Shown here: piece after piece, positions 23,807 through 44,752 of the stretch
How positions within the stretch are numbered: position 1 is the first letter of the stretch
Layout: every line of letters starts with the position of its first letter
DNA from: Macrostomum lignano
Lineage: Eukaryota
Assembly: GCA_002269645.1 (NCBI GenBank)
Contig: NIVC01001525.1
Coordinates: 186,001 to 250,000 of the forward strand
Direction of reading: 5' to 3'
DNA length: 64,000 bases
Position numbers and translations under genes: made by a program
Notes under the pieces: generated by a model
Databases searched by the model: none
What the model was told of the DNA's origin: nothing
The model's input: only the letters and a program-made list of their open reading frames with translations

Positions 23807-26226
23807 TCAGAGCATCCATGATATCGGCGGAGCACCAGCCTGGCCTTCATGCCGCATGAAGTCAACGAGATTTCTACTCCGTCTAGCGGCATTATTTCGG
23901 AAATCATTCTGTTCGAAGCTGGACAGTCCGTACCGAAGTTCGAAGAACATATTGGCTGCCACCAAAGTGACAACTGCCAGCTCCATCTCCGACTCATCAA
24001 AGCCTTTGTCTACGGAATCTTCATCATCTGAATAGCTAATTGGAAATGAATCCCTTGGCATCCATTTTTCGAAAACTTCTTCCAGCGTTGCTTTGCGCTC
24101 GCACTCACAAGAATCTCCCAAGAACACTCGGTAGTCAGTAGTAGCCATTGACTGCCTGACTGTGATTTGCTGGAGCGGATTCTCAGTGCAGTGCCGACAG
24201 TCGCAGTTGTGCAGCAGCACGTTTTCACCCTCCAGATATCTCACAAAATTCGCAGTCCAGAATTGTCGTCGTGTCGAGTCCCAGACATCGTCCCTTCTTG
24301 GGTTTCCGTTGTGTTGGCCGGTTGCAAACTTGACACTTTTTACAGACACGTTCGTCATCTGGGGCCCGTCATGTACAGCAAAATGGAACTTTTCGAGATC
24401 CCGGCAACTGTACTTGAAGTCTTTACCGATGCACCCCTTCTCAAAGCACAGGCCGTTTAGGGCCACGTAATTTCTAATGAAGGAAGCAAAATTATTTTGG
24501 CTGTTGGTGCTGCTGCTGAGAAACATCTCAAGAAAGCAAGGAATTTCAATTGCTGCTGTGGCGTGAGCTGGGTGATAGCGGTATGAGAAATACTCATGGA
24601 TATCTGAGACGGTCAGGTAAAGGATGGCCGACTTAAATAGCTCGTAGCTCACCGGTATGTCCACTGACACACCTTCGTTCATCCAGGTGCACAGACATCG
24701 CTCACCCATTCCTGCCGGTATTTGACCCTGGTTTCTTCTAATGTGATAAATAGGCAATTAGATAATAGCATGCACGGTGAGCAATTAATTAGGCCCTAGA
24801 CAAACCTACTTGGAGCGTCAGAGATTTTAAAGCTATTAATCCTAATCGCCTATCGCCGGTCGGCGAGTTCTACCAGTCTTTCTCCAATAGCCGCAGGTAC
24901 AGTACAAGAAAATAAAGAACACGAGGGAACACAAACCGGAAGATTTAGAGAGTGATAATCCTATTTCAAGAATAACTAACTTGATTGACGGTTTAATTTG
25001 ATTAGCTGAGTTACAAGATTTAGAGCAAATTCGCGGCGCAGATAATTAGACTGATGATAACGAATAGTAACGATTAATAATAATGATTATACGAGTATTA
25101 CGCACTGACAAGCGGATCTCAGCTGAAGAAGAAGAAGGAGGCACCGAACACAGGACCACGGAGAAAGACTCCTAACCCCTGGCCTAAGCCAGAACCTACA
25201 CTCAAACGAGAGCCCTGCCGAACCGACCGTTCAACGGAGTACCGACTAAATTCTATCGGCACTGCCCTTCAGTGTAACACTGAGGCCCTCGGGGTCGAGG
25301 CCGCGTACTTGATCAGATCCGACAGTCTCTATCTAACCGCGCTTGATAGCGACGACTTCAGACAGGAATTTGCCGTAGACGTTACGCCACAAGACTACTG
25401 CGGTTGGGCGGGGACAAAGATATGGACCGGGGGTGATGAATTCAGGCGCCTCAAAGCGCGAACCAACAAGAGGAGAAAAATCGGGCCACCGGCCGGAAAC
25501 TGGACAAGACAAACCGGGGAAAGGGAGCAAGCGAGATCCGATTGCCAAAACACACTTTCATTTATAGTCAGAGTCACAACCCCTCAAAACCCCCCTCAAG
25601 CCGGGTGGTGGTCGTCTGGCCGGCCGCTTGCTTAAGCCGAATTGCACTGTGCCCGCGGCGCCGGGTAAAATTGAAACTTGCCGCGTGCCAGGGTCCAGGC
25701 CGGTTCTGATTGGCTGACCGCGCAAAGCTGGGGTTCGCAGACAAACTCAACCCTCCGCTGAGTCACAAAATTGGCGTCTAACTCTAACCTGTTTACGCAA
25801 AATTGATTCCAACTAACAAGGAAAAAGTACACCAAAAACGCATGACTAAACTAAAGCAAAATAACAATTCAATAACAATATAGAAACTAATGCAGTCAAT
25901 TTACAACAAAATATACGCAAAGATGCTCACACTACACTAATTATTGGCCTCCCGAACACTCTGCGCCCTTCCCCTTGTTGTTCTGACGTCACATCCCTAA
26001 AAAGTGTTACCAGCCTCTCGTGAAACTCAAAAAATGGTTCTTCTTCATTTGTTTCGTAGGTGAGGACGACCATCAAAACCAGGCGGCGTTTTAGCGTTGG
26101 GTCGTTTTTACACTGGTCGATTTTCATCAGGCGTTCAATGTCCGAGACAGCACTTTCAGTTAGTTGCAGCTCAAATTGTTTATAGTTGTTAGAGTTCATC
26201 TGCAAAATGATAGGTTCCATCTTCAT
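23807..26226 (-). pseudogene. Intronless orphan gene (about 406 aa) interrupted by a solo LTR, with a C-terminal frameshift
   Basis: Removing 24742-25940 (LTR plus one TSD) joins ...GRPII to RRNQGQIP... in frame (96+310 aa). The paralog at 63294 has a different, longer C-terminus. Confidence 0.75.
24742..25936 (-). mobile_element. Solo LTR (1195 bp), Gypsy-like by its 4-bp TSD
   Basis: TG...CA termini; TSD CTAA at 24738-24741 and 25937-25940; on the minus strand TGACTCA, CCAAT and TATAAAT motifs; a diverged homolog lies at 57109-58292. Confidence 0.85.
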
Positions 26227-27256
26227 TACAATATTTTTAACATTACGGAATGAAAGCTAACATAACGTGATACAAAAAAAGAATTCAAAATCTAACAATT
26301 TATTTTCAAAATTACCAGTAGCAAGACTACTAGTAAAAATTCAAGTGATGTTTGAAATTAAAATATCCTGCAATATTTTTTAAAACTTTTTTGCATTCCA
26401 CCAACCCAAAATTGTGGGATAGGTAGTTGCAATCGCAACTACTTATATTTATAGATAAATATTCAATAACTGCTTCAGTTAATATATTGTGAAAAGTTTC
26501 ACTCACCATGAAGTATGAAAAAGTGGCTTGGTGATGAACTATGGAGTAAGACACAGTATGAAAGAATATATTCACAAGATCCTCAGGCAGCTCAATATAT
26601 TGATTTTAGAGTTTTATTTATTTTATTTACTAGTCTGCTTAAACACTGGAGACAGGAGAAATAAAACAACACTGGCACAAACGGCGGCGGTCTTTTGCTT
26701 ATCGAGACTGTGAGCTCACTCATCAGTCAAATATGCAATGCATTGTGTGCCGAAACAATAAGGAGGGATGGGCGGCTGAAAGGGATGAGGGGCTGGGAGA
26801 GATGAGGGGGCTGGTAGGGATGAGGGGGCTGGGGAAGAAAAGTGGGACTGGGAATGTCTAACACACAGGCAGTCAGCAGCTGTACTACGTTTGTAGCTGC
26901 CCTCTCCCGCTGTGTCATGGCGGTACGGGCAGTACACAATGCGTCCTCACACTGAGCAGCTACAGCTAGGCTGGGCTGCATGTTTCTCCTCTCCAGATGC
27001 ATATACTTGGCAGGAGAGAGGGTTTTCAGCTTATTATCGATCCTCTCTCTCTGCTCGCCGTTGCCATGGTTCACCCATTTTGCGGGGAAAATCATATAAT
27101 GCAGCCCATTGTAATTAAAATGGCTGTTGAGGCATCTCTGTAAGAAACGCTGCTCAAATATTAAAGAACTACTGCGTGTACCAGACAAGACTATATTAGA
27201 ATAACTAGTGGTCCTTGATTTTTAACAAGTCCTTATTTACCGCCAACAAGAAAACA

Positions 27257-27517
27257 AGTAGAAGGCATGAGGGGGCTTCTGGGACAAAATTTTTCACGTC
27301 CTCCATAATCCCATTAAATCCATCCATATTATCCCTGACAGAATCAGAGCATAACAGGTGTCCTACTGTTATGCTCTGAGGGTTTATGCTCTGAGCATAA
27401 CAGCTCCAAATCCACCCATAGCATCTTCGAAACAATCAGAAAAAAATCTGCATTCTTCTCCCCACATTCAATCCACAACGTGCTACCAGATCCCTAAGAC
27501 TTTAAATCATCAGCGCA
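27257..27517 (+). repeat. Left terminal inverted repeat (261 bp)
   Basis: Reverse complement of 40957-41299 apart from an 82-bp extra segment on the right. Confidence 0.95.
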
Positions 27518-27557
27518 GGGTGCTCACCCTTTGAAAAAAATTAAATTCTCAATAAAA

Positions 27558-27800
27558 ATGTTTCCAGTTGTCTCTCCAGGTTCTTATTACAAAGCGCACG
27601 AGCCTAATTACAAGAGTAAGTACCAATGCAAAGTTGAATGCAGTGAGTACATGAGAAAATATTGGCCCAGAGTTGATATCAATGTCCCTAATATTAATCT
27701 AGCTCTCCAAAGACACTGGTTTCATAAGTATGGAGTAACCTACGTAAAAGATTACGACAGCTACTATAACTTTGCAGAAATCATTAGGCAATTGCGTTAA
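27558..27800 (+). CDS. Small (80 aa) uncharacterised Polinton protein
   Basis: ATG-initiated ORF; amino-acid-level homology to relics at 43441-43632 and about 43890-43965. Confidence 0.55.
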   Translation: MFPVVSPGSYYKAHEPNYKSKYQCKVECSEYMRKYWPRVDINVPNINLALQRHWFHKYGVTYVKDYDSYYNFAEIIRQLR

Positions 27801-27997
27801 AAAACCGAAAGGCCAAAAAGCCTAAAGGCCAAAAGGCCAAAAAGCCAAAAGGCCAAAATCGTTTGCATTCTGGCCTTGCGCGAGGCCAAAATCGTTTGCA
27901 TTCTGGCCTTCCCTCGAGACGGAATTCTTCCTCGGCTGGGCTCAGTTAAAGTGAAAATCTCTCTCCCCCACGCGCGCTCTCTCTACCCCCATATCTT

Positions 27998-28456
27998 TCA
28001 AGAGCCTTCCCAATTCATTGTTAGGAGCGCACAAAATAAACCCTGCTCCGAGCACCCCGTGCACCAGCCCTCTCTCCCTGTGCACCCACCCTCGGCGTCC
28101 ATTCCCAACCCAAACTTTGCCTTACTAAAAATAACAGCTTTAACTAGCTTCCGAGCGATCGATTCCTTCCACCCGCTTGAAGCCCCCATATGGTCTAGTC
28201 TCCTAAGCATTTCTTTGTCCCAGCGATTCTTCTCCTCAGGAAAATCCCTATACTTAACGTCGTGCCACATGCACACAGAGTCTAGCTCGTTCACAGGCTT
28301 ATGACTAGGATTTGGATTATTGTTTTTATCTAACTGTATTTCAAGTGGATTCAAAGGCCCACAATATTTATAGCCGGGAAGTGTCCAGCCTTTGTTTGGA
28401 TGAGGAAGCTTTTCTATCAGTCCATGTGAATCTAACTTACCACCAGAGCGTTGCAT
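27998..28456 (-). CDS. Parvovirus-VP1-type phospholipase A2
   Basis: LPGYKYCGPLN Ca-binding loop and NELDSVCMWHDVKY catalytic HD motif. Confidence 0.85.
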   Translation of the reverse strand: MQRSGGKLDSHGLIEKLPHPNKGWTLPGYKYCGPLNPLEIQLDKNNNPNPSHKPVNELDSVCMWHDVKYRDFPEEKNRWDKEMLRRLDHMGASSGWKESIARKLVKAVIFSKAKFGLGMDAEGGCTGREGWCTGCSEQGLFCALLTMNWEGS

Positions 28457-28486
28457 TATTTTATTTTAAATTTTCTTTTTTAAAAA

Positions 28487-29524
28487 ATGACAGATCAGAA
28501 ACTTAAAAAACTCTACTACAGCGACAAAGGATTCTTTGTAGGAAAAAATGCAGTCACCAAACTCGCAGAACTAAGTAAGGAACCAAAAGCTAAAGTAGAA
28601 AAGTGGCTCTCTAAGCAAGCAGTCTACCAAGTCTATTTCCCACCAGTAAAATTTGAAAGGCCCCATTTCAGTATTTATAAACCTAATGAGGCGCACCAAG
28701 CAGATCTTCTGTTTCTCCCCAATGACTCAGGCTACAAGTATGCTCTCACAATTATAGACGTTGCTTCCAGATATAAGGAAGCTCGCCCACTCAAGACGAA
28801 GAAGTCAGAAGCAGTTGCAGCCGCCCTCCAAGATGTTTATAAAAACTCACCCCTTAGTTACCCTGAAATCTTTATGACGGACCCTGGTAAAGAATTCATG
28901 GGTGCAGTGAAATCACTTATGGAAAAGAAAAATACAGAGATTCGCTATGGCAGAACTGAGCTCCACAGAGACCAGGCTTTTGTGGAAAGATTCAATCTAA
29001 CTCTAGCCAAGAGGCTATTCACTAAGCAGACAGCTGAAGAGCTGAAACTAAAAAGTGGTCAGTACTATTCAAAATGGACAGACCGGCTCCCCACTGTTAT
29101 AGAGCAACTTAACAATGAAGCCACACGCATGACTGGATTGAAACCATCCCATGCAATTAAACAAGACACTGTCGAACTTAAGTCATCTCATAAAACAGAC
29201 AACAACACGACAACCGCACAAAACACACACAACACAAAACACACCTCGAACTACCCTAAGCTTCCAGGAGTTGAATCACCATACATACTGACAAACTCTG
29301 AGTTTCTACGCTTTTTATATCTACCTGGAGAGCTAGAGAAGGACACCAAAAGAAGAGCTACAGATCCATACTTCAGCCTTGATGTACATAAAATAGACAG
29401 ACATTTTACCTCCGACTCTGGTGACTATTACTTTTTATCTCAGGCCTTTAACCCTAAATCCCCCACGCGGTCATTCACTAGAGCTGAACTCCTAGTGATA
29501 CCAGCTGACACGGAAATTAATTAA
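28487..29524 (+). CDS. Retroviral-type (rve) DDE integrase
   Basis: HQADLL, FMTDPGKEF and VERFNLTL supply D, D and E; intact 345-aa ORF. Confidence 0.92.
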   Translation: MTDQKLKKLYYSDKGFFVGKNAVTKLAELSKEPKAKVEKWLSKQAVYQVYFPPVKFERPHFSIYKPNEAHQADLLFLPNDSGYKYALTIIDVASRYKEARPLKTKKSEAVAAALQDVYKNSPLSYPEIFMTDPGKEFMGAVKSLMEKKNTEIRYGRTELHRDQAFVERFNLTLAKRLFTKQTAEELKLKSGQYYSKWTDRLPTVIEQLNNEATRMTGLKPSHAIKQDTVELKSSHKTDNNTTTAQNTHNTKHTSNYPKLPGVESPYILTNSEFLRFLYLPGELEKDTKRRATDPYFSLDVHKIDRHFTSDSGDYYFLSQAFNPKSPTRSFTRAELLVIPADTEIN

Positions 29525-29540
29525 AATATTAAAATAAAAA

Positions 29541-29997
29541 ATGACAAAGATTAAACCAGAACCATCAATAAACTCAATAAAATCATTGAATCAAAGAGAC
29601 CAGGTCTTATATCAATAAAGGTGCCAAAGTAAAAGTCGATCCCGTGCAGCAAATAGTTCAATGTAATGAACAAAGACACAGCATCACAGATGAAAAGTCA
29701 GGAGGAATCCTACCATTAGCAGCTCTTATTCCGATCATTGCAGGCGCTGTAAGTGCCGCAGGTGGTGTAGCTGGAGGTGTAGCAACTGCTGTTAAAGCTG
29801 GGAATGATAGAGCCCACCAGCTAGAATTACAAAAGATTGCAAGAGACAAAGGTATAACAATTAAGGCAGGAGAGGGCTGCCCTGAGGGCTGCCCCGATCG
29901 TGATGATTGTGAGCATGAAAATTCTGTAAGCAAGTCTGACATTGTCAAAGCCATCATGACACTGCACAATGCTGGGTTTACAATAATGCGGATGTGA
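29541..29997 (+). CDS. Small virion protein with an adenovirus pX(mu)-like hydrophobic motif; N-terminus apparently frameshifted
   Basis: GGILPLAALIPIIAGAVSAAGGVAGGVA resembles adenovirus pX GGILPLLIPLIAAAIGAVPGIA. An ATG at 29541 needs frame changes to reach the 29644 ORF. Confidence 0.6.
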
Positions 29998-30121
29998 TGA
30001 GGTTTAAAACCCCGCTTTATCCAGCTTCATAAACCTAACGCTACTGATAGGATGTAGAAACAGTTCAACTTTTCTATCAGGGTGGTCACCCTCAAAAATT
30101 TTTTTTATTTTATAGAAAAAA

Positions 30122-33100
30122 ATGCCAAAAGCTAATCCAGCAAAAGATTTAGTCAACAAATATTTTTCAAAAGGCGTCTCATTTCAAGACAAAAGTAATT
30201 TACTAAGAAAAGCGTGCAAGCAAAAGTTTAACACCGACCCTGGTCACCTGGGAAGCTATGAAAAACAGTTGGAAATCATCAATCAATTAAAATCCAACCA
30301 GTATGCGCCTATAAAAAATCCTGCAAAGGAACACCAAGAGAGGAGTCGCAACTTAGTTAACAAATACGAAACTCTCACTGGTGAAAAAGCAAATACCCAC
30401 AAAACAAGAGAAATTAGAGCAATTAATCCATTTAAAAGAGTCGGAGCTTGTCATTGAAGAGATTAATTTTGCACAGAGAAGTTTACAGAACATTACATAG
30501 AGTACACAATCCCAATTAACGGCACCAACGGTACCACCGCAAACATCTACGACTATAAAGACAGCATCCAATCAGTTGTTGATCACACACTCAAAACACG
30601 CAAGACCTTTAAACTACAGATATCATTCAAGATTGCGTTTTATATGCCTGCGAAACCCACTGAGCATCTCGAGTATTACATGACAACAAAGGCAAAGCCA
30701 TTCACCCCTACAGACACACTGGATCCTTTCCTTCAAGATGTCAATAAGAAAATTGAAGCGTTTACATCCAGAGGTTCCGGATGGGTCGTGGGAGGGATTC
30801 AAAGCGACTGTCATGGTCATGAAATATGACCCACTTAAAGCCTCCTCTTATATAGAGCTCCCGCATAAGCTAGCCGGCAAAAAAGCTTGCATAAATGTTA
30901 AAAATAAAGACAATTGCTGTGCCTATGGGCAGTTCTTTCTGCACTTCTTCATGATAGTGTCCCTCACCACCCCGAAAGAACCTCAAATTATCAAAATTAT
31001 TTCAACTACTATCTCATCGAATGCGAAAAGAAGGGAATCAGGTTTGACAAAGGAGGCTTGGCGATCTCTCAGATCCCAAAGCTAGAAGAAGTGTTTAATA
31101 ACAAAATTAGAATCACAGTCTTTGAGTGGAGTGAAAAAACTGAGAACGTTCAACTGGTCAGATGTAGCAAAGACGTTTTAGATCCTGAGGGGAAAAGGCG
31201 GATTGAAGTGGATCTTCTAGTGATTGGTAATTTACTAGAGGAGGCTCACTATGTTTGGATTAAAGATCTTTCAAGACTCATTCACAAGCAGTTGAATAAT
31301 CATCACGAGGCTGTTGCCATCTGCCGCTTGTGCCTTAAGCATTACAGTGGACCTGAACGCTTTGAAAAACTAGCAGAGCATGAATTATCATGCGAGGATC
31401 ACCCGACAAACTGCTCTCTTCCTTCAGCTGAAGAGAAGTATCTCCGGTTTAAGAACTATCACAAGATGGAGAAGCTCCCATTTGTTGTATATGCTGATTT
31501 CGAATGCTCAATCGTGCCGGAAACTCAAAAACAAACTCAAACTCAAAAACATGTCCCCAATTCAGTAGCATATGCCTTTATTAATACAAAAGGACTTGTT
31601 GAGTATAATTATTTCTTTGGAGAGCAGTGTGTGGAGCAGTTTATTGCCAGAATGTTAGAGTTGCAAAAATGATTAGCACCCTTCAACCTGTTCCAATAAG
31701 TATGTCTGAGGAGGATGAAAGTAATTTCCTATCAGCAACTCATTGCCACATCTGCAGGAAACAGTTCACTTGCACTGATTTAAAAACCCCACCGTTAGGG
31801 ACCACTGCCACTATACTGGGAAATTTAGAGGTGCAGCGCATAACACCTGTAATCTAAAGCTAAAATCGAACATTCATGATCTAACGATATTTTGTCACAA
31901 CGCAAAGAACTATGACATGCATTTAATAGTTGAAAAAATCGGCATGATTCCAGACATACACCTTGACTGCATCGCAGAGAACAAGGAGAAGTTTAAGTGT
32001 GTTGATATTAAACAGGATAATTCGGGTACAGGTAAAATAAGACTGAAGGATTCATATCAATTTCTAGCTGCCAGTCTAGACGAACTAAGCAAGAATTAAA
32101 AGATGAACAATGTACATATACAAAGATGTTTGCAAGTAAAATTTACAACAGTGATGAATCATTTAAACTCCTGAGAACCAAAGGCTTCTACCCCTATGAA
32201 AATATTACTGGGTATCACGTATTTGAAGAAGGTTTACCACACAGGAGAAGTTCTTTTCAAAGCTAACAGACTCTGGAATCTCTGACAAAGACTATGAGCA
32301 CGCGAAGCATGTCTATAATTACTTTAATTGTCAAAACTTCTTCCAGTATCACCTGCTTTACCTCTTCACAGATGTGTTTCTGCTGGCCGATGTGTTTGAA
32401 ACCTTCAGATACACCTGGTACACAGCATATGGCCTCGATCCAGCACATTATGTGTCTCTGCCTGCCACTAGCTGGGAATCTTTGCTTAAAATGAAATGGG
32501 ATCAAGATCCAGATTGGTACATTGAACTTCTTACAGACACTGACATGTACAATTTTGTCGAATCGTCAAAGCGAGGGGGATCTCAATTTGCGTTAACAGG
32601 TATGCAAAAGCAAACAACCCTACATTGATCTTACAATAAGGAGCAGCCCTCAAACTACATTACTTACTTGGACGCTAATAATCTCTACGGGTGGGCGATG
32701 AGTCAAGATCTTCCAGTTAGAGATTTTCGATGGCTACCCTCATCAGAATTCAAACAGGACTTTTCATTGGCTGCAATTTATGAAGTTGATGTTTACATTC
32801 CACCAGAGCTTCACGACTATTTTTCTGACTTTCCACCCTTCCCAGAGAACATCAAGTGCCCGAAAATAATCGAAACTCCCAATGATAATAATGGAACTTG
32901 GCACCTGTCAGGAACAAAAAAGAACATACGGAGAAACTAACACAGAATCTAAACAACAAGACACGTTAAAAATCCATTACAAACTGCTTCAGTATTTTAT
33001 CTCACTTGGTTGCAGGGTCACCAAAGTTCACAGGGCTCTTACATTTACAGAGGAAGCGTGGATGAAACCCTACATTGATAAGAACACCCAGTTTAGGACC

Positions 33101-33942
33101 AAAGCAACCAACGACTTTGACAAGAACCTCTTTAAGTTGGCCAACAACTCTGTCTATGGCAAGACTCTTGAGAATGAGCGGAAAAGAACAAACCTGAAAC
33201 TTGTTACCTCATCAGAGCCTGCTGTTATTCAGGCAAATATGTCAAAGCCAACATTCAAAGAACTCCATATCTTTAATAGCTACTAGGTGTGATCATATTT
33301 TACAAAACCAAGGTGACGCTGCGCAAGCCGATCTATACAGGTGTCACTGTACTCGACGAATCAAAACGTCTGATGTACCAGTTCTTGTATGGCATGAAGC
33401 AGCAGTACAAGGATAAAATGAAACTCTTGTACACTGACACAGACAGTTTTATTATGGACATTCAAACAGAAGACTTTTATCAGGACATGCTGCAGCAAAA
33501 AGATTTGTTTGACTTGTCTGAGTATGATAAATCTTTCAGGACACAGAATGGCGATCAAGTGTTTGACGCTACTAACAAGAAAGTGATTGGGAAAATGAAG
33601 GACGAGATTGCTGGCGACATAATCACTGAATTCATTGGGTTGAGAGCAAAATCCTATTTTGTAAAATGTGAGTCGTCAGACCCAATTAAAAAATCAAAGG
33701 GAATTCCGAAACGTGTGGTTAGGAAGGAAATTAATGAAGCTGAATACAGAGACGCCTTGAATTGTAACAAAAAGACATCTCATGAGTTCTCAAAGCTACA
33801 ATCTAAAAACCATATTATTCACACAATTCAGCAAAAGAAGATCGGACTGTCAGGTGCAGATAACAAGAGATTCATTTTTGATGACAACATTAACAGTCTA
33901 CCGTTCGGGCACTGGAGATTAGGCTTAGGAGGTTGGGTTTAG
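30122..33942 (+). pseudogene. Protein-primed family B DNA polymerase, broken by about a dozen frameshifts or stops
   Basis: RGSGW, YADFEC (ExoI), HNAKNYD (ExoII), LLADVFE (ExoIII), YLDANNLYG (A), KLANNSVYGK (B) and YTDTDS (C) are spread over different frames. The 30122-30457 ORF is assumed to be the N-terminus. Confidence 0.9.
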
Positions 33943-34029
33943 GAGGTGGAGATTAAGCTTAGGAGATTGGGTTTAAGAGGTGGAGATTAGGTTTAGGTTT
34001 AAGAGAAAGTTTAGTAAACCTCATAAAAA

Positions 34030-34431
34030 ATGACAACAAATAACTTTCTTGAAGATTTGGCTAATGAACTGGAAATCCCAAACTTTAGAGGAATATTTAT
34101 GAGGGACACTCTGCCTGATTATCCTCTAAGAAAAGAATGTGGCATCATGAACTTTGACACCACCGATAAGCCAGGATCTCATTGGGTTTGCTGGGTGATT
34201 GATCCCGATCGCAAGCACAAGTGTTATTACTTCGATAGCTATGGGACGGCAGTACCAGAAGAGCTAAGAAATTATATGAAGGGGAAAAATAATAAAAAAA
34301 TTTACCACTCAGACTTTATTCTCCAAGGTCTTAGCAGTGATATTTGCGGTGAGCTGTGCATGACTGTTTTGTACGCAATGACCAAAACACGAAAGACCTA
34401 CAAGGAAATTATTCATACCTGTGTTTCATAG
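34030..34431 (+). CDS. Adenain-like cysteine protease
   Basis: GSHW (His), YFDSYG (Asp) and Q..SSDICGELC (Gln/Cys). Confidence 0.88.
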   Translation: MTTNNFLEDLANELEIPNFRGIFMRDTLPDYPLRKECGIMNFDTTDKPGSHWVCWVIDPDRKHKCYYFDSYGTAVPEELRNYMKGKNNKKIYHSDFILQGLSSDICGELCMTVLYAMTKTRKTYKEIIHTCVS

Positions 34432-34435
34432 GGGT

Positions 34436-35147
34436 TCATTGTGCATTCCTCGTTGTACTTCTCGTTGTCCTTCTTTCCGCATAATGTTGAAGAACTTTCT
34501 CGAGTTCATTTCTCAGCTGACTCATGTCATCAGTACCGACCATGTTCAAGTTCATTCGAATTGATTGTTCATAAAGATCCTGAATGGTTTTGAACTCATC
34601 CTCTGAAATGAACTTATCCTCGATTGCCCTTGAAATGTACCCTATGATTGAAGTGTGCACCCCTTTCTCTTTTACTTGCTTCTCCTGTAGCTGCTTTAGT
34701 TTTTTTCGCCTGTTTCGCGCTACTGCTCCAGTAATTGCTGAAATAAGTCCACATGCAGCACCCACAGAGCCGAGCGGGATTGCGATTGGGGCTGTGATGG
34801 CTGGCAACACTGAGACAGCTGCAGCAGATCCAGATAGAACAGACACAGATCCTAGAATCATATTGCTGTAGTCGAAAAATTTACAGTGGCTGTCATAGCG
34901 CTTAATTTTCTGTGTTGTGGAAAATATTTTTTTCAAGATCATCGCGCATTTTTTGAATCTCCACCAGTCGAAACTGTTGAGAGTTACAAGAAATGACAGG
35001 GTAGAGTTTTTGTTGCTCATATTGGGGTGCATTCAGATTCGGTGCCAGGTTTTGTGTGTTCGAATTCGGTGCCATTGAGTTTGGTGCTGTCGGTATTTTA
35101 GGTTCAACGTATTGAGACTGATCGTATAGAGAATTTTGTTGGGCCAT
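34436..35147 (-). pseudogene. Putative membrane protein with one frameshift near 34925
   Basis: MAQQ...LYPVI..QQFRLVEIQKMRDDLEK continues in another frame as KKIFSTTQKIKRY and then a long Gly/Ala-rich hydrophobic segment. Confidence 0.55.
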
Positions 35148-35238
35148 TTTTTTCTCTAGAAAAAATAAAAAAATTATAAAACTATCCGGTTGAAAGATCT
35201 GTTTTCTTTTTGATAATTCCATCTGCACCGCCGGTTGT

Positions 35239-36048
35239 CTAGGCGGCTCTCTTGACGCTGGAGGATCGCGAGTCCAGCAGGCAGCGGCTGGGCGGCTGAC
35301 GTTTGAGAGCGTGCCGGATTACTCCGTCGGGGTCCAGAGCTCCTTCTACTCGATCTGTAGACATGACCGGACGAGCAGCAGATTCTGCTTCATCAATAGC
35401 AATATCACGAAGATTGAGTGTTCTCTCCAGACGATCAAGCCTCCTTATTATTTTACCCCAAGAGCTATACATTCCGTTTAGATAGCTACTGTGTGATACA
35501 TCCTTTCTCTTTAATGCTTCAAGTCTTTCTTTGATTCGATCATGCAACGCTGTTGACTGAGTCATGAACTCTTCTAAATTCCTCACTTTACCTGTGTTGG
35601 TTGCGACGTTTTCTTTAATTCTATCATGCAACGCTGTTGACCGAGTCATGAACTCTTCTAAATTATTTACTTTAGCTGTGTTTGTGAAAACTCCTCCTTC
35701 AAGAATACGCATCCGTCTATCAATGGAATTTCCCAGAAGATTAACTGTCGATCTCAAACCGTTGATTTGCGAGACTATCGAAGTTATTTCTGACCTAAGT
35801 TCATTAGTTGCGTTTAACAACGGCACATAAAGCTTATCACTTTCAAACTTCTGCCTAGCTACTTTAAGCCTGAGATCTTCCATGTTTATTTGCAACTGGT
35901 GCATGGAGCGCTCTAGGGCTTTCAGTCTGTTTTTATTCAGTTTGATCTCTGGGATCTCTTCATCAATGTTAATGTAGCGCTTGTCAAGGAAGGAAGTTGT
36001 GAGAGTGCTGTTGCCTGTAGTTGATTCACCTGCAAAATTAATAGACAT
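35239..36048 (-). CDS. Coiled-coil protein with an internal ~26-aa repeat
   Basis: Intact 269-aa ORF; NTAKVNNLEEFMTRSTALHDRIKE and NTGKVRNLEEFMTQSTALHDRIKE. Confidence 0.65.
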   Translation of the reverse strand: MSINFAGESTTGNSTLTTSFLDKRYINIDEEIPEIKLNKNRLKALERSMHQLQINMEDLRLKVARQKFESDKLYVPLLNATNELRSEITSIVSQINGLRSTVNLLGNSIDRRMRILEGGVFTNTAKVNNLEEFMTRSTALHDRIKENVATNTGKVRNLEEFMTQSTALHDRIKERLEALKRKDVSHSSYLNGMYSSWGKIIRRLDRLERTLNLRDIAIDEAESAARPVMSTDRVEGALDPDGVIRHALKRQPPSRCLLDSRSSSVKRAA

Positions 36049-36063
36049 TTTTTAAATGAAAAA

Positions 36064-36864
36064 TTAAAGTAAAATTCTTTTCTCCTTATTAATCATGACA
36101 AACTGATAGGGTTGGTTCCACTTTTCATAGCATATGTTAACAAATTCCTCCTGTGATATTGTTCTGTTAGAGTTCTTAGCTGGATATGTAATGTGAGCTG
36201 GGGCAATGACCTCATTATAAAATCGTTTCAGTCGATCTTGTGGTATGGTTGGGAAAAGGAGAATCAAATTACAGTTACCTCTAATTGTTTTATTCGGCAG
36301 TTCAAACCAGTTTTGGGCAATGTAAATAACATTGCAATTATTATGTCTACCCCGGGTGAAATAATTTTCTATCTGTTTCTGGGGACCGGTCATGCAGTCA
36401 TCAAAGACAATCAGGTGCTTTCTCCCCTTTTCTAGTTCATCAGGTTGAGGTAAGAGTTTAGTTTTAGGATCTATCTGTGGATCTCCATAAGTGAAAACTT
36501 TAATGTTTTGCCATTTTTCATTGTCTGGGATGTGCTTTGCGTATTCAGTGGCTACAACTTCCGGGTTGCTGTTGAGGTCTTTTTGATGTCTAAAACATTG
36601 AATAATATCTTCCTTGTTGAGTTTGTTCTGTAGGCCCGCTACTAGCATTTTATACTCATCTTGATACAGAGTGGGTGAATAGATATGTAGTGTGTCATAA
36701 TCGAGGAATCCAGGTCTGAGGAGCATGTTAAAAACTCTGAAGGTTTTCCCTGACCCAGATGAGCCAACAACAATGCATCGGAAGTGCCCTGGAATTATCT
36801 CGTTGTGAGCAAATTTTATCTGATTGCGTGTCCAGTGGGGACGAAAGTCGTTTGTGAAGTCCAT
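36064..36864 (-). CDS. A32/FtsK-like packaging ATPase
   Basis: Walker A GSSGSGKT, Walker B LIVFDD, and GRHNNCNVIYIAQ. Confidence 0.92.
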   Translation of the reverse strand: MDFTNDFRPHWTRNQIKFAHNEIIPGHFRCIVVGSSGSGKTFRVFNMLLRPGFLDYDTLHIYSPTLYQDEYKMLVAGLQNKLNKEDIIQCFRHQKDLNSNPEVVATEYAKHIPDNEKWQNIKVFTYGDPQIDPKTKLLPQPDELEKGRKHLIVFDDCMTGPQKQIENYFTRGRHNNCNVIYIAQNWFELPNKTIRGNCNLILLFPTIPQDRLKRFYNEVIAPAHITYPAKNSNRTISQEEFVNICYEKWNQPYQFVMINKEKRILL

Positions 36865-36916
36865 TTTTTTATGTAAAAAAACTTTTTCTTTTTAAACTTG
36901 TGTATTTAAGACGCGT

Positions 36917-38002
36917 GTGTCTTTTTTCGGGTTGTGTGTGTCTTTTTTTCGGGATGCGGCTCGTGCTAACGTTGACAAGCATGATGCGGATGTGGCTCTG
37001 ATCAGTAACTTTTGGGCGTACATGTTCAAGGAGTTTAGTGTATCGAATGGGAGCACTGAGTTGGAGCGAATCGCCAACTTTGGAATTGTCTATGACGCTC
37101 ATTGTTTGATCGAGAATCCTGATTTTATTCAGTTGGGAAGTGGTGCGGGTTTTATTGCAGATGAAAAAGAAGGAGACATCAATGACAGTGGCTATAAAAA
37201 TAGGAAGAAGAGATACAACTATGCATTGCAAGGTGCTGATGATGCTGCTAAGAACCCGCAGTATCGGTCTGTTGATGTATTTGTACCACTGAGATTCATG
37301 AGTGGATTCTGTAATACATTTAATCGACTGACTAGTAACTTTAGCTACACATTTAGACTGACTAGAGATGATCGCAGTAGAGTGTTGTGGACTGGGGCGG
37401 ACCACACTGGGATGGCTGTGAAGCTAACCGGAATCGAGCTGTATTTGGAAGTCATTGAGCCAAAGACCGCACTAAAAGCAGACTATCTTAAGGCAATAGA
37501 GAAGGACATTGATGTTGCATACACGGCCTACATGTGTCGAGATGAGCGAAACGAAACTAGAACAAACATCTGCATCAAAGAGGGATCATGCAGCAATCCA
37601 AGGTATATCATTATTAACATGAGAAACCCAAATAGCATTATACGCTACATGCATGGAGACGTGCGGTCCATTCAGCATGAAATCAGTGATAATCTTTACC
37701 CTGCACTGCCACAAAATGGAGATTTCAGTCAGAACAAGATTAGCAAATTTTACAACGAGTTGGTCGACTTGGCTGTGAAAGAGAACAATGGAATTGCTAT
37801 CACTGCTCTTCAATATGGAACTCTATATCCAATGTTTGGAGCTGATGTGTCTGCCAGACAAATGCCTACTGATAACAGCCCTGTGAATATCGTGACTAAC
37901 ATTGAGAGGACTACCGCAACACCCGTGGACTTGTACATTATCTATGCATTTGAGAGGAAGGTGAAGCTTAACATGATCAACAATTCATCCAGTAAAGTTT
38001 AA
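36917..38002 (+). pseudogene. Major capsid protein (double jelly-roll type), N-terminus apparently deleted
   Basis: ALISNFWAYMFKEFSVSNGSTELERIANFG and PRYIII..YP motifs resemble Polinton MCPs. There is no ATG upstream of these motifs, and the junction has a duplicated GTGTGTCTTTTTTCGGG. Confidence 0.65.
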
Positions 38003-38025
38003 ATATTTTTTTGTGGGTGAAAAAA

Positions 38026-38877
38026 ATGGAAGCCATAGCCGAAAGACTAAACAACATTGTTTCACACTCCAAGGAGAGCATTCCTATTACAATAACTGGG
38101 CGAATTAATGACTCAAACGGGATGTTTGTTGAAATCCAGGATTTGGATCCAGGCGCTAATTACCATGTCTATCTTAACGACTTCACTGGTTGGTCAAACG
38201 TTCCCAATGTGATGGCAGCAAATAATAAGTTTTATTACAAATGGAAAGGTGCAGCAGCAGACCCTGTGGTATTCCATGTGAGCACGCAAAGTGTGGATAC
38301 CTACAATAACTTTCTAGAAAATGTCTTTACTAAGAGAGGCCATTTTGAGACACCTGATGCGAGTAAGCCAGAGAAGAAACTGTTCCCTGTCAAACTAACC
38401 TATGATCTCACTGTAATGAGAGTGGTCATGCAAGTTCACAAAGATGCGGAGGTTGAGTTTAAAGATGACACTTGGTATAGGGAACTGGGATTCGAGAAGA
38501 AAGTTTATAAGGCAGAATCCGCGGCGCGGACCGCCACTCAAGCATCGGGGACCGTTAAAATGGTCCGGGAAAGTGTAAGCGGTTTGTTCTTAGCACCCAA
38601 TATTGCAGACATTGTAAAGGGTTTGAATATTCTAATCAGAAGCAATCTCAGTCTTGATTGGGTATTTAAGGGAAAGCGAACGAATATTTTGTACAACATC
38701 TCCAACTCTGTTGCTGGAGGACAGATGGTGGTAGAGAAACCAAATCCAGTGAAAAGAGTTGTATTGAGTAATAAGGAGATTCACGAGATTGTGCTACAGT
38801 TTGAGACTGAAGATGGGGTGGGTGTTGATTTCAACGGTGAAGAGTTTGTGTTGACGTTGATCATTGAGAGAATGTGA
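38026..38877 (+). CDS. Minor capsid (penton-like) protein
   Basis: Located after the MCP; C-terminal ILIRSNL...ILYNI...GQMVVEKPNPVKRV...IVLQFETEDG.VDFNGEEFVLTLII pattern. Confidence 0.75.
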   Translation: MEAIAERLNNIVSHSKESIPITITGRINDSNGMFVEIQDLDPGANYHVYLNDFTGWSNVPNVMAANNKFYYKWKGAAADPVVFHVSTQSVDTYNNFLENVFTKRGHFETPDASKPEKKLFPVKLTYDLTVMRVVMQVHKDAEVEFKDDTWYRELGFEKKVYKAESAARTATQASGTVKMVRESVSGLFLAPNIADIVKGLNILIRSNLSLDWVFKGKRTNILYNISNSVAGGQMVVEKPNPVKRVVLSNKEIHEIVLQFETEDGVGVDFNGEEFVLTLIIERM

Positions 38878-39498
38878 GAAAATGTGTTCCCTTTTAAGTA
38901 CGCTTGCCGAGAATAGAGTGGTATGAAAAAATGCGCGCATGTGTACTCAAAATCTCTTACCCCATTCTGACAGTTTGTGGGCGTGGGCGTCGCGTGTGTG
39001 GGGGAGAGGGGAGTGTATGTGTGTGGGCGCAGCGCGCGTTGGGGAGAGAGATTTTCACTTTAACTGAGCCCAGCCGAGGAAGAATTTCCTTGATTGATAT
39101 TGGCCTTCGCTTCTCTTCTCTCCACACAAGTGTACAGTCTTGAGCACACTGGTTTCGGCTACAATTTCTCTTTCCACCATGCCCTTCTCCTTCATACTCC
39201 TCACCTCGCGCTATGCTCTGTGTACAGAGAAGTCTCACGCCTCATGCTCTATCGTACACTGAGCTATATCGATTGTTTTTCCCTGCTTGACTCCAAGATT
39301 GTACAGTCTAGAATTTTCTGGAATTTTCTAGCTGTATAGCTGTATTTAAGCAAATGCAGAAACACTCGGGTTGATTCTCCCCGCATATGCCATCAACTGC
39401 GACTGAGAAACGACGACTGCAGGAACTTAAGCACGCTGAAAGTGATCTAAGAAATAGTCCGCCAAACTAGAAGATTAGAAGACAAGAAGATTTAGAAA

Positions 39499-40176
39499 AT
39501 GGAAGTCGAGTGGAAGCTTCATTTGACAGATAAGCAAGGCCTTTGTGCCATGCTACAAAGAGTTTTACAGGATATTCCGTCACATCTACAAGCAAGAAGA
39601 AGAGAGGAACTAACCACCTTTTTCGGTCTAGAAACTGGCGACCTACCAATCGAGTTTTTCGCCATGGCCCCTGATGATATCGCCGCAGCGAATGAAGCGC
39701 AAAATGTGAGTAGCGAAGAGAAGAAGGCGGCGGCTCTGCAGAAGAAGATGGCGGATCTGCAGATATTCAGGGAGAAGTTGTACGCATCCCGCGTAACACT
39801 AGCTGATCAGCTGATGGACGCTGTTGATCACCAGCTTCCATCTGGCGAGCAGAACATCATCACTAGGGTGAAGGCGGCTCTAGCAAAATACAAGAAGACT
39901 CAAATTGGAGGTCTACATTGGATTCTCGAAGTTGGGCGGCTGCTAAAAACTTATCGCAACGAGAACTTTGGACAAGATGTTAAAGTGCGGTTCGCCCATT
40001 TGTGTAAAAATGTAAACATCCAGGAATCAACTGGCTATTTGTACATTCGTCTGTACAAACTGTCTGTTACCCACCCAGGCTTGAGACAGGTGTCAATGCC
40101 AATTAGGGAACTAAACTCTAAGATGAAGTTTCTAGAAGAAATTTTGGCCAGTGATCCTGCGTGGAAAGTTGTGTAA
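39499..40176 (+). CDS. Uncharacterised 225-aa Polinton accessory protein
   Basis: Intact ATG ORF; the helical C-terminal half is weakly DUF3102-like by eye. Confidence 0.55.
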   Translation: MEVEWKLHLTDKQGLCAMLQRVLQDIPSHLQARRREELTTFFGLETGDLPIEFFAMAPDDIAAANEAQNVSSEEKKAAALQKKMADLQIFREKLYASRVTLADQLMDAVDHQLPSGEQNIITRVKAALAKYKKTQIGGLHWILEVGRLLKTYRNENFGQDVKVRFAHLCKNVNIQESTGYLYIRLYKLSVTHPGLRQVSMPIRELNSKMKFLEEILASDPAWKVV

Positions 40177-40199
40177 TTTTTAAATTCAGTTCATTTAGA

Positions 40200-40790
40200 A
40201 TTTTTCTAACGCGTTAGAATTTCAAAGAGAAGATTCAACAACTGGAGACAGCCGATTGGTTAAGTAGAGGAGGGTAGCAATTTTCTCAGTACTGTGTGCA
40301 ACTCAGTCGGTGGGTTTTAAATTCTAAAGCTGTTAGAAATTTCTATGTGAAAAGTTTCCCGCAAGATAAGCTTGGGCACACCAAATTTTCACATAGAAAA
40401 TTCTAACGCGTTAGAGAATCTAGCTGCTGGCTCAAAGGAACGCTAGGCTGGCTCTGTATGGTTAAATAGAGGGGGGGTAGAAATTTTCTAACGCCGTTAG
40501 AATTTTCTATGTGAAAAGCTTCCCGCATGATAAGCTTGGCACACCAAATTTTCACATAGAAAATTCTAACGCGTTAGAGAATCTAGCTGCTGGCTCAAAG
40601 GAACGCTAGGCTGGCTCTGTATGGTTAAATAGAGGGGGGTAGAAATTTTCTAACGCCGTTAGAATTTTCTATGTGAAAAGCTTCCCGCATGATAAGCTTG
40701 GCACACCAAATTTTCACATAGAAAATTCTAACGGCGTTAGAGAATCTAGCTGCTGGCTCAAAGGAACGCTAGGCTGGCTCTGTATGTTGT
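40200..40790. repeat. About 162-bp tandem palindromic repeats (3 full units plus a degenerate one)
   Basis: GAAAATTCTAAC recurs at 40396, 40559 and 40721; 23-bp inverted arms CGTTAGAATTTTCTATGTGAAAA / TTTTCACATAGAAAATTCTAACG. Confidence 0.9.
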
Positions 40791-40956
40791 TGAAGAATTC
40801 TAACTCAGATCCTACATAGTGTCTGTTTTTTCTACCATTTTTGATAATCTTGTAATAGTTGATACATATCCTATCAGCTGTGCAACCGTTAATAAATATA
40901 TAATTCTTACTAATGAATGATAAAATTATTTACATTTTTTCAATGGGTAAGGACCT

Positions 40957-41299
40957 TGCGCTGATGATTTAAAGTCTTAGGGATCTGGTAGCACGTTGTG
41001 GATTGAATGTGGGGAGAAGAATGCAGATTTTTTTCTGATTGTTTCGAAGATGCTATGGGTGGATTTGGAGCTGTTATGCTCAGAGCATAAACCCTCAGAG
41101 CATAACAGTAGGACACCTGTTATGCTCTGATTCTGTCAGGGATAATATGGATGGATTTAATGGGATTATGGAGGACGTTTTGTGAGCGAGTGCGACCCCC
41201 CTTTTTTTCTGATTCTGTCAGGGATAATATGGATGGATTTAATGGGATTATGGAGGACGTGAAAAATTTTGTCCCAGAAGCCCCCTCATGCCTTCTACT
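40957..41299 (-). repeat. Right terminal inverted repeat (343 bp including an 82-bp extra segment)
   Basis: Matches the left TIR; a 52-bp duplication (41127-41178, 41209-41260) flanks 30 unique nt. Confidence 0.95.
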
Positions 41300-41320
41300 A
41301 AAACAAAAACGAAATAAAAT

Positions 41321-42375
41321 ATGAGCCTACTGCAATCTTTAGATATTCGGCAAAGCGTGCTCGCCCTGTGCGATATTCTCGGATCTTCTCAGTCAAAGCG
41401 TAACAAAATAGCCAGACCTGTCGAGGCGTGCCCAATTCTGAGACTCACACCGCCAACGACTTCCGACAGCCAAGACGCCAACTGTGAGATCTTGATTGCC
41501 AGTCTGGAAGCTGAGGATTCTGAAGACACGACCGGATCGAATCAAACTCCATATGCCGTGGTGTCTTCATTGCACTCGGTAAAAGTCACCTTCACGGGCT
41601 TACCGAATTTAAGCGAGCGATTCAGTGCAACTTTTCCCCCAGTGCTCAGTGATCTGTGCAGACTTGTATCGCAACTGATTAAAGTGACTGGAGTCCAGCA
41701 GCTCAGGATTCAAGTCGATCCAAGCACTGCTGACCGAATACTCAAATCATCAGTCCAACCGCAGCTGCTTGATGACGTTTCAATCAGGCATTTCCTGTCA
41801 TCCGCTTTTGTGTTCTGCCATCTACTGAGGGTCCTGGGAGAAACCCGTCTCGAGTCACTTTTGAACCTGAATGCTGGCGATGCGCTGGTGACGATCGGAG
41901 ATCAGCCCCAATGCTCGATGAGAGTCGCTGTGAGTTCCTGCTTAAACGGAGAAGATGGAGCAGTCAATGAAGAGTTGGAGCATTGCATCGCTGAGAGCTC
42001 AAAGCGTTCTACGCCAGTTTATCTGTGCATTCTGTTCAACGAGATCAGGACCTGCAAATGGTACCTGAGGACCAGAAAAGAAGTTGAATGTCAACGTAAG
42101 CGGTTGCCCAACCATGACGTGACTCGAATTCGAGTGGAATCGGATTCTGGCCTGAAAATCCGAGTTATTCTATTCGATGTTCAACAAGGAGAATGCTATC
42201 AGGACACAGGAGCTCTGCCAGCGGAACAGGTACTAAGCGAGTTCAGCGATGACCAGTTTCTGTGTGCTGCGGTTTCCAAGTGTGAGCAGCTGGCTCAGGA
42301 GCACTCGTTTCAGCTGGAGTGCTTCACGGTGCCCTGCCGAAACACCGCTCACATGCTGCAGGCAGCAGCAAAAGT
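41321..42375 (+). CDS. Large first coding exon of unknown domain, probably the N-terminus of the ankyrin-cGLR gene
   Basis: 352-aa ORF with donor GTAAGA at 42376 (phase 2), compatible with the 42460-42508 exon. Confidence 0.6.
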
Positions 42376-42459
42376 GTAAGACAGTTTTAAAAGTGCGCAA
42401 TGTCAGTTTATGTTAGTGGTGACAAAATGAACTTATATGGAATTTGCGTCACATTTCAG

Positions 42460-42508
42460 AGCTCAGGAAGCCCAAAAGCAGAGTGCTGAGGCAGCATCGC
42501 CAGCACAT
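42460..42508 (+). CDS. 49-nt linker exon
   Basis: tttcag acceptor and GTAAGT donor; phase 2 to phase 0, open (AQEAQKQSAEAASPAH). Confidence 0.55.
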
Positions 42509-42636
42509 GTAAGTGGTCACAGAACAGCACAATGCTGTTGCATGTAATTGTCATGAGGGGCTTTCAGGACGCAATTTTCAACTTTCCAGAAGTGGGAGGT
42601 CGATTTGAGAAAGTCCTCCAGCTAGGTACCCTTAAA

Positions 42637-43439
42637 TGTTACGGTACGGTGTAATCTACCAATAATCTACTTGTACAAGAAATACACAATAAAATATCTT
42701 TCTGAACGCTTGCAAGAAAACAGTAGCAGAATCAATTTTTTACGAGTAACTCAAGCAAATTTATTTAAATTCCTAATTTACTGTCATAATCATTACAATT
42801 ACTGTATGCTTTGAAACTACATCTACTCGAACGTACGGTAGGTACCCTTCTGACGTCTCCCTCTAATCGAGCTGAGTCGGCGTCAGGACACACGGACTCT
42901 CTTTCCCCTCTATGCAACCGAAAGAAAGAAGGCAGAGTGCGCACTTACTCAGCTGGCGGCTGTCGCTTAGGGATGGTGCAGTAGGTGGCCTTTTTGGTAT
43001 ATTTCCTTTTCAGGTAGTACGACCGTAACTTCGGCTGTACTAGGTATAGCGCTGACGGAATGCAGGGTTCTAAGAGAGGGGGTAGCCGGGCCACGCACCG
43101 CTCCAACCCGCCGCGAGCGATGCTAAATAGCACACGCCCACGGAGGGGGGAGGGCCACGCGCTCTCCACCCCACTACCCACTACCCCACCAACCCCGCAG
43201 TCACCCCCCCCCGGGGACGGCAGCACCAAGCCCGCCGCCGGCTCAGCCAATCACTACACGACTGGGCTGGCCGCGACCAATCGCACGCGAGGCGAGCGAA
43301 CAAATACCAAAAGACCAAACCGACTTCAGCCTCTAACTGCGGCATACGCAAGGGGGGGGATAACAAAAAATAGTTGAGGGGTGACTCAGCCCGCTGGGAG
43401 GCTAGGTGCACTGGCACTGTGAAAGTGCACAGCGCAACA
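42637..43439 (-). mobile_element. Solo-LTR-like sequence in an intron
   Basis: Ends TGTTACG...CGCAACA (6/7 inverted match); CCAAT and TGACTCA motifs inside; no TSD found. Confidence 0.45.
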
Positions 43440-44048
43440 TCTACGAGTAGTAAGCTTCGAGCGCCTGATAAATGTATTCGGTGCGATAATTTCCCGAACT
43501 CTTGCATGACTGGGTGCATGCCTTCTTACAAAGATACCTAAATTTTAAATAAGGCTCATGCTGTTTACAATAGAAGCCTGGATAGACGACAGGAAATATT
43601 TTTGTTCCTATTTTTTGTAATGTTGTTCTCAAAGTGATTCATTGATACGCGCGTAGATTAAGTAAGTAAGCATACAAAATTACGAGCTATGAAGTTAGAA
43701 GATATTCAAAGTAAGTCGGCCCATCATTCTTTATTTTAATAGGAACATTACAGATTCTGTCCTGTCCTGAAACTCCCTCATGAAAACTAATATTAATAAA
43801 AATTTTGCCATACAGCCAGTTAAGATAATAACATTAATTTGATAAAAATATGGTACACAATAATCTTTGCAGACTCCCGGAGCTCCACATTAATATTAAG
43901 GTTAATTTCCACACGAGGCCAGAACTCTTGCATATAGCTCGAATTTTAAATGAGGCTCGTGCTGAAAACTGCTAGCCATAATAATTTTACCATAGCCAGT
44001 TAAAGTACAAAAATTTGATATAAATATGCTTCACAATAAACTTTACAG

Positions 44049-44656: not shown

Positions 44657-44714
44657 GTGAGTAGAAATACCTGAAATAATCAGGCATAATAGTAAGACAA
44701 AACTCAATATTATT

Positions 44715-44752
44715 TGCGACGCGTTTCGGCTAAAACTAGCCATCTTCAGGCA
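44715..44752 (-). ncRNA. Hammerhead ribozyme motif (inverted copy)
   Basis: Reverse complement of 45318-45355. Confidence 0.7.

Follow-up and report, generated by a model that had tools for sequence, protein, structure and literature searches.

The flatworm Macrostomum lignano carries, in a 64,000-nucleotide stretch of contig NIVC01001525.1 (GenBank assembly GCA_002269645.1, positions 186,001 to 250,000 of the forward strand; hereafter the window, to which coordinates refer unless another locus is named), a decayed virus-like element of the Polinton/Maverick type at the extreme 5' end of a gene (BOX15_Mlig015600g2) for an ankyrin-repeat protein with a Mab-21/cGAS-like receptor (cGLR)-type nucleotidyltransferase domain. 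The account that we favor, probable in our view though far from certain, is that this gene is still transcribed via the right end of the element and possesses an ordinary transposon-derived 5' end. A sister copy of the element resides inside the closest paralogue of the gene, and the gene itself appears to have been remodelled, with two modules joined via what looks like a former trans-splice acceptor. The locus adds a further example to phenomena that are already known; its importance lies chiefly in the repeated occurrence of Polinton traces at two cGLR-family paralogues and in the fusion of the two modules.

Boundaries, gene content and decay of the element

The element occupies positions 27257-41299 (14,043 bp) and is bounded by terminal inverted repeats (TIRs). 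The left TIR (27257-27546; 290 nt) begins with AGTAGAAGG and the right TIR (40928-41299; 372 nt) ends with CCTTCTACT; the termini, 5'-AGTAGAAGG...CCTTCTACT-3', are thus of the AG...CT type. When the two arms are aligned, their outer ~262 nt are identical and divergence is confined to the innermost ~30 nt, while the right arm contains one 82-nt subterminal repeat unit more than the left arm. The hexanucleotide AAAACA directly abuts both TIRs (27251-27256 and 41300-41305) and represents a target-site duplication (TSD). By chance, six out of six positions would match precisely at the two TIR ends with a probability of ~1/4096, or somewhat above this value given the A-rich context. The element was integrated by the usual integrase route, which leaves a 6-bp TSD, and the unoccupied site at 41300 can be reconstructed as ...CAACAAG AAAACA AAAACGAAATAAAATATG.

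The start codon of the host gene (ATG at 41321) is positioned 21 nt beyond the right end of the element (6 nt of TSD plus 15 nt). A preliminary description of this stretch of DNA had proposed a Polinton/adintovirus provirus with precisely this spacing from the start codon, and both the nature of the element and its geometry are borne out by the TIRs, the TSD and the gene set reported here. An in-frame TAA is present two codons upstream of the ATG; the reading frame therefore has no possible earlier start, and the insertion is unable to alter the protein. The N-terminus is fixed by this stop codon regardless of the 5' end that the transcript possesses, and the host coding sequence is untouched. 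Within the right TIR, a T-rich tract is followed by a CAG trinucleotide (41275-41277), 43 nt before the ATG. The last three open reading frames (ORFs) of the element have the same orientation as the host gene.

Several genes of the element match known families. On the plus strand, these are an uninterrupted rve (retrovirus-like) integrase of 345 aa (28487-29524; Pfam PF00665, 38.1 bits against a cut-off of 32.6), an ORF for an adenovirus pX/mu-like core protein (29644-29997; PF05829, 30.6 bits against a cut-off of 25) and a protein-primed DNA polymerase (PolB; 30476-33921) whose reading frame is broken and of which one fragment scores 25.3 bits in Pfam. The polymerase was recognized with a profile built from 44 full-length relatives (1192 positions), 91% of which is covered collinearly by the polymerase region of the window; one of these relatives, P0051, matches the Pfam family DNA_pol_B_2 at 77.6 bits. 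An open 133-aa ORF (34030-34431, plus strand) resembles adenain/C5-like maturation proteases and scores just below the cut-off (PF00770, 20.3 bits against 21.3); the protease of the sister copy is encoded by an ORF of equal length. The gene for the double-jelly-roll major capsid protein (36917-38002, plus strand) likewise falls just short of its cut-off (PF21738, 23.5 bits against 27). On the minus strand, we found an open ORF for a parvovirus-type phospholipase-A2 (PLA2)-like protein (27998-28456; PF08398, 50.8 bits, E 2e-13) and an open 266-aa ORF for a packaging ATPase of the A32/FtsK-HerA type (36064-36864; PF04665, 29.3 bits, over the cut-off).

For the remaining coding regions, family assignments were not obtained. 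The ORF at 38011-38877 (plus strand) has no family match and is a putative minor capsid (penton) gene by its position. Two ORFs on the minus strand (34436-35032, and 35239-36048, the latter predicted to form coiled coils) matched no family significantly, and no family could be named for the ORF at 39499-40176 (plus strand), which lies in a cargo region not common to the sister copy. A small TIR-proximal ORF (27531-27800, plus strand) belongs to no Pfam family; its N-terminus is echoed by the relic in intron 2 of the host gene described below. In front of the right TIR, a 163-bp tandem repeat is present in 2.9 copies (40322-40786) and is composed of perfect palindromes of the TTCTAACGCGTTAGAA type.

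With its length of 14 kb, long TIRs, AG...CT ends and 6-bp TSD, and with genes for PolB, an rve integrase, an A32-type ATPase and, at scores just under their cut-offs, an adenain-like protease and a double-jelly-roll capsid protein, the element shares the attributes of Polintons/Mavericks. PLA2-like and pX-like genes are characteristic of the virion modules of Alpha-class adintoviruses (Starrett et al., 2021; PMC8502044); the element is therefore an endogenous Polinton/Maverick of the adintovirus kind, with an adintovirus-like gene set and a virion module of the Alpha type. Like the Alpha-class adintoviruses, it has an animal host, adenovirus-like virion genes and an integrase, and it shares the combination of a PLA2-like gene and a pX-like core protein with the Alpha (Mayetiola-class) module. 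However, the PLA2-like and pX-like proteins are encoded here by separate ORFs on opposite strands, whereas they form a single "PLA2X" protein in the adintoviruses. Furthermore, in contrast to the latter, the element is known here only as an integrated, decayed copy, and its Alpha label refers to the virion genes. The main text of the adintovirus study (PMC8502044) does not mention flatworms, and a literature search retrieved no paper on Polintons/Mavericks in M. lignano.

A close relative of the element is present at the locus (L001, on contig NIVC01001377.1) that encodes the closest paralogue of the host protein, PAA68676.1. This 16.7-kb sister Polinton (L001 positions 11875-28588) has identical termini, is flanked by the TSD CCCCTC and is inserted in reverse orientation in the intron that matches intron 8 of the window gene. 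The sequences flanking it in L001 align to the window on both sides of positions ~50789-50796 in intron 8, so that the window gene provides the empty site of the L001 insertion. Compared block by block, the two elements share 85% identity in the ATPase block, 94-97% in the other gene-carrying portions and 84-86% in the inner blocks next to the TIRs. The window copy hence differs from its sister by a deletion, by a non-homologous cargo segment and by a more diverged ATPase block. This mosaic identity, seen in the ATPase block (window 36064-36864 against L001 18732-20272) and in the non-homologous region before the right TIR, suggests recombination between lineages.

Unlike an intact Polinton, the window copy is defective. 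Its PolB region (30476-33921) falls into 11 stop-free pieces separated by 10 reading-frame changes, with no further same-frame stops between the pieces. A single deletion has broken the capsid gene, which, by comparison with the 428-aa ORF of the L001 copy, is 5'-truncated and devoid of an ATG; over the 349 residues that remain, the two are 97% identical. The remaining named genes of the element have open frames. Across the polymerase region, 66 substitutions and 22 indels separate the window (30000-34100) and L001 (21400-25600) copies; every indel is non-triplet, and only four of them are located in homopolymers. The preliminary description had proposed that the insertion might couple expression of the sensor gene to viral reactivation. 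For the window copy, such a coupling appears unlikely in view of the ten interruptions of its polymerase frame and the truncation of its capsid gene.

The M. lignano genome is repeat-rich and difficult to assemble, and the ratio of indels to substitutions between the element copies is high. Nonetheless, we consider it extremely improbable that the juxtaposition of the element and the gene is an artefact caused by a repeat-induced chimeric join in the PacBio/Canu assembly, given that complete TIRs are present at both ends together with a perfect 6-bp duplication of host sequence, and that the sister copy has the same architecture and a matching empty site.

The host gene and its two modules

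The host gene consists of nine exons (41321-52580), all of its introns are of the GT-AG type, and its translation corresponds to the GenBank entry PAA66849.1 in 1783 of 1783 residues. The ORF starting at 41321 is therefore the first exon of a gene whose product has a Mab-21/cGLR-type domain in its C-terminal part, as the preliminary description had supposed. PAA66849.1 (1783 aa) was found inside the 90%-identity cluster of the representative P0001; the homology searches themselves listed cluster representatives only. The BOX15 annotation in GenBank stems from a genome-guided RNA-seq assembly (StringTie/TACO/TBONE) of line DV1, in which novel transcripts required either an expression value of at least 0.5 reads per kilobase per million mapped reads (RPKM) or support from a de novo assembly (PMC5730564). 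An initial view of two separate genes, one with the 41321 ORF and one with the Mab-21 part, had been drawn from the representatives P0001 (591 aa) and P0002 (360 aa) and from eight paralogue loci without the N-terminal part. It was dropped after the match to PAA66849.1 and is kept solely as an alternative concerning the mature mRNAs. We also considered whether the suffix "g2" in the locus tag might denote the second of several genes in a transcriptional unit beginning inside the element. This reading was rejected, since the existence of tags like g12 indicates that the suffixes number clusters of similar transcripts. A search of the region from 24 to 54 kb against Rfam yielded no match.

The protein is composed of two modules. 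Module A (41321-47939, plus strand) is encoded by exons 1-5 (41321-42375, 42460-42508, 44049-44656, 47425-47458 and 47539-47939) and comprises a 352-aa N-terminal domain without a Pfam family, followed by ankyrin repeats. No fold could be assigned to the N-terminal domain from its AlphaFold2 (AF2) model, whose predicted local distance difference test (pLDDT) score is 35, and a "Ras-associating" label, which is merely the UniRef name of a paralogue, was not used. When exon 5 is read without onward splicing, a TGA codon (47941-47943) closes a protein of 716 aa. Module B (48748-52580, plus strand) is encoded by exons 6-9 (48748-49941, 50013-50054, 50138-50493 and 50968-52580) and contains ankyrin repeats, the Mab-21/cGLR-type nucleotidyltransferase domain and a long C-terminal extension.

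Elsewhere in the genome these modules occur separately. Module A is found alone in PAA68172.1 (831 aa, no Mab-21 domain), and module B occurs by itself at eight further loci (L001-L008), where the 10 kb in front of it are devoid of module A; none of the 29 ankyrin-Mab-21 paralogue models contains the exons of module A. Module B of the window gene retains a conserved internal ATG (48752), 4 nt after a CTTCAG acceptor that ends at 48747. In the window gene (48707-48752) as in paralogues lacking module A (L001 ~9961-10000; L004 ~6981-7020), the ATG is conserved and is preceded by a polypyrimidine tract and, at a distance of 4 nt, by a YTNCAG acceptor. The sequence [T/C]TNCAG is the motif of spliced-leader acceptors in M. 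lignano, where ~30% of the genes are subject to spliced-leader trans-splicing (PMC8629364). CTTCAG is hence a candidate spliced-leader acceptor that is employed in cis at this locus: it can be paired with the donor at 47940, and the resulting join of the two modules is in frame. Judged from this arrangement, the locus looks like a fusion that would have arisen when a donor came to lie upstream of a former trans-splice acceptor.

Because the modules are separate elsewhere and both the ATG and the YTNCAG acceptor are conserved, module B may also be produced as a cistron of its own, 7.4 kb from the insertion. In its full form, this alternative holds that module A (ending at the stop codon 47941-47943) and module B (starting at the ATG 48752) give rise to separate mature mRNAs from one precursor, that module B is trans-spliced to the spliced leader at CTTCAG, and that the 1783-aa model represents a minor cis-spliced or precursor form. 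The Polinton would then adjoin the start of an ankyrin gene, and the sensor, 7.4 kb away, would be affected only via a shared upstream promoter. We accord this possibility a modest chance. The separate existence of the modules and the conservation of the acceptor where module A is absent speak for it, as does the gap of 804 nt between the stop codon and the acceptor, which is below the 1-kb criterion for operons (PMC8629364). On the other hand, the deposited RNA-seq-based model uses the intron from donor 47940 to acceptor 48747 and maintains the reading frame; a cis donor located upstream is expected to out-compete trans-splicing at such an acceptor (Conrad et al., as quoted in PMC8629364); and the TBONE pipeline, which cuts transcriptional units at observed trans-splice sites, made no cut at this position (PMC5730564).

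Assignment of module B to the cGLR family draws on several types of data. Its only Pfam match is Mab-21_C (28.7 bits), and a sequence search of the PDB with a trimmed Mab-21 query yielded a single match, MAB21L1 (E 0.0099); searches of the PDB with whole proteins or with an ankyrin-containing alignment were uninformative, as ankyrin/DARPin matches swamped the results. The AF2 model of the Mab-21 part has a mean pLDDT of 68, with values below 50 in the nucleotidyltransferase core (residues 59-180). Foldseek lists MAB21L1, cGAS and Sp-cGLR1 as top matches with a probability of 1.0, but with E ~1e-2, a target-normalized template-modelling (TM) score of ~0.33 and a core of low confidence. As a sequence pattern only, module B shows the motifs that Li et al. 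(2023; PMC9980059) use as a criterion for cGLRs: a GS loop (TGSYAEG), a DxD motif (DSDID) and, 57 residues further on, an Asp whose counterpart in the alignment with PAA86972.1 is the Asp of "TDLIPA". The distant paralogue P0026 (38% identical) carries NVN in place of DID, which makes it probable that some members of the family no longer possess the catalytic metal-binding pair.

In a catalogue and screen of cGLRs, most flatworms were found to lack cGLRs other than Mab-21-like proteins, with the exception of M. lignano and its expanded ankyrin-cGLR family (Li et al., 2023; PMC9980059). PAA68676.1 (our P0003), which is 88% identical to module B and the closest paralogue, is contained in the domain table of that study and was included in its screen as construct 93. 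Its main text names no M. lignano protein as active and does not mention the genus, and PAA66849.1 did not appear in those of its supplementary files that we examined. Like the ankyrin-repeat cGLRs of Li et al., the window protein has ankyrin repeats N-terminal to the Mab-21 domain, a GS loop, a DxD motif and an aligned third acidic residue; module B is 29% identical to PAA86972.1 of M. lignano (construct 89; E 1e-34). In contrast to these proteins, the product of the window gene has a further N-terminal module of 716 aa, which they lack. The label "putative cGLR-family gene" seems fair.

Probable transcription across the insertion site

The insertion appears to have landed in the 5' leader or the core-promoter region of the gene, and the former upstream DNA (from 27250 leftward) would now be displaced by 14 kb. 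The gene is most likely still transcribed, because the RNA-seq-derived model comes from the line and the assembly that carry the insertion. Most economically, transcription would start in the right end of the element or read through it, and splicing could subsequently eliminate the resulting leader, with the CAG of the TIR as the acceptor or through trans-splicing of the spliced leader. The outcome would be an ordinary transposon-derived 5' end and not a functional coupling to the activity of the virus. In this respect the locus resembles 5'-leader insertions of transposons that supply promoters to host genes: the element is situated immediately upstream of an intact start codon, and element genes are present on the same strand. 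It is at most a candidate case of promoter donation, and in M. lignano spliced-leader trans-splicing could render the origin of the 5' end irrelevant for the mature mRNA.

Several considerations weigh against the account just given. The reads behind the deposited model might stem from paralogues that are 90-92% identical, and the sequence around the CAG of the TIR departs from the complete [T/C]TNCAG motif. The pre-insertion promoter is deduced, no empty allele of the window insertion having been retrieved; look-ups of P0001, P0002, P0032 and the window ORF as exact gene products found no record. Moreover, some of the frame changes in PolB may be long-read assembly errors in repeated DNA; the unusually high ratio of indels to substitutions (22:66) suggests such errors as a contributor, while the absence of any frame error in ~5.3 kb of adjacent host coding sequence counts against this explanation.

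The insertion could instead have silenced the gene, which would then be a pseudogene-in-waiting whose frame is intact merely because the insertion is recent; the reads underlying the annotated transcript would in that event have come from paralogues of near-identical sequence, or else from a homeologous or allelic copy that lacks the insertion. The identity of the outer ~262 nt of the TIR arms is compatible with this possibility, as the insertion may be too young for the host ORF to have decayed. So are the displacement of the former upstream region and the fact that the assembly holds 180 Mb of duplicated blocks with at least 95% identity (PMC5730564). However, protein identity to the nearest known paralogues amounts to no more than 90-92%, yet the deposited protein corresponds to this very locus at 1783 of 1783 residues, and the expression or assembly support demanded of novel transcripts also counts against silencing. 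The existence of a transcript-based model on the inserted assembly thus speaks weakly against silencing, which we judge to be unlikely, and continued transcription through the right end of the element remains the reading that we favor.

If it is true that expression starts in the element, the locus would provide a naturally occurring example in which an endogenous DNA virus has rewired a gene of an innate-immune family in a tractable, regenerating flatworm. Otherwise, a transposon has inserted in the ordinary way into a genome of which repeats make up one half, and this plainer interpretation is the default at present.

Polinton traces at related loci and the surrounding sequence

The preliminary description had also noted a relic of a related Polinton gene in intron 2 (42509-44048) of the host gene and had taken it as a hint that the locus was hit more than once. 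A match of ~35 codons on the minus strand (~43510-43614), 51% identical to the start of the TIR-proximal ORF 27531-27800, is indeed present (tblastx against the whole element, E 3e-8; pairwise E 7e-11), and its source is a more distant relative of the element. The relic is confined to this short segment: searches with the element ORFs of at least 100 aa (tblastn and phmmer), with the PolB profile, and of the intron ORFs against Pfam detected no other Polinton-like coding similarity outside the element.

Altogether, three traces of Polintons are thus found at two paralogues, namely the 5' insertion, the relic in intron 2 and the independent insertion in the PAA68676.1 gene. One may ask if this Polinton lineage preferentially integrates into, or is retained at, ankyrin-cGLR genes and if the host gains a virus-linked regulation of its sensors. 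In the 229 kb of other paralogue loci that we sampled, Polinton sequence amounts to 7.3%, against 3.05% for all DNA transposons together in the M. lignano genome. However, the window itself was picked for having a Polinton, and only one of the eight other loci carries one, a result with a chance probability of ~0.05-0.4 depending on the copy number in the genome. Both copies are decayed, and their target sites, AAAACA and CCCCTC, share no motif. Because of the single positive among the eight other loci and the ascertainment of the window, an association can be called only possible, and we regard preferential integration or retention with a gain for the host as improbable. The most far-reaching version, in which the lineage is non-randomly tied to ankyrin-cGLR genes and element-derived transcription drives or modulates the sensor, so that the host would read the activity of its own endogenous DNA viruses, strikes us as very improbable.

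Other repeats are shared between the window and the paralogue loci. A short repeat in intron 3 of the host gene (44686-45409) recurs within an intron of the L002 paralogue (11004-11348); the ORF contained in it (44869-45090) has no Pfam match. Copies of a 1.2-kb repeat, 81-83% identical to each other, are located upstream of the Polinton (24766-25936) and downstream of the host gene (57115-58292), and this repeat also occurs downstream of the paralogue gene in L002/L004 (14593-15757).

The locus as a whole is bracketed by a segmental duplication whose parts (1-4274 and 22076-24501 versus 59114-64000) are 96-98% identical. It includes a minus-strand ORF of 223-316 aa without a Pfam family (23807-24757 and 63294-63965) as well as coding-like repeats of the GENWKG type. 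An element with a non-LTR (long terminal repeat) reverse transcriptase, whose ORFs are on the minus strand (1462-3549), interrupts a segment that is duplicated without interruption at 59980-61083. The alignments of its two flanks overlap by 14 bp (60365-60378), which resembles a target duplication, and a filled and an empty site are hence present in one window. Finally, an 8.25-kb tandem duplication (5556-13806 and 13808-22060; 99.65% identity) is made up mostly of internal satellite arrays and displays a strong strand-specific GC skew.

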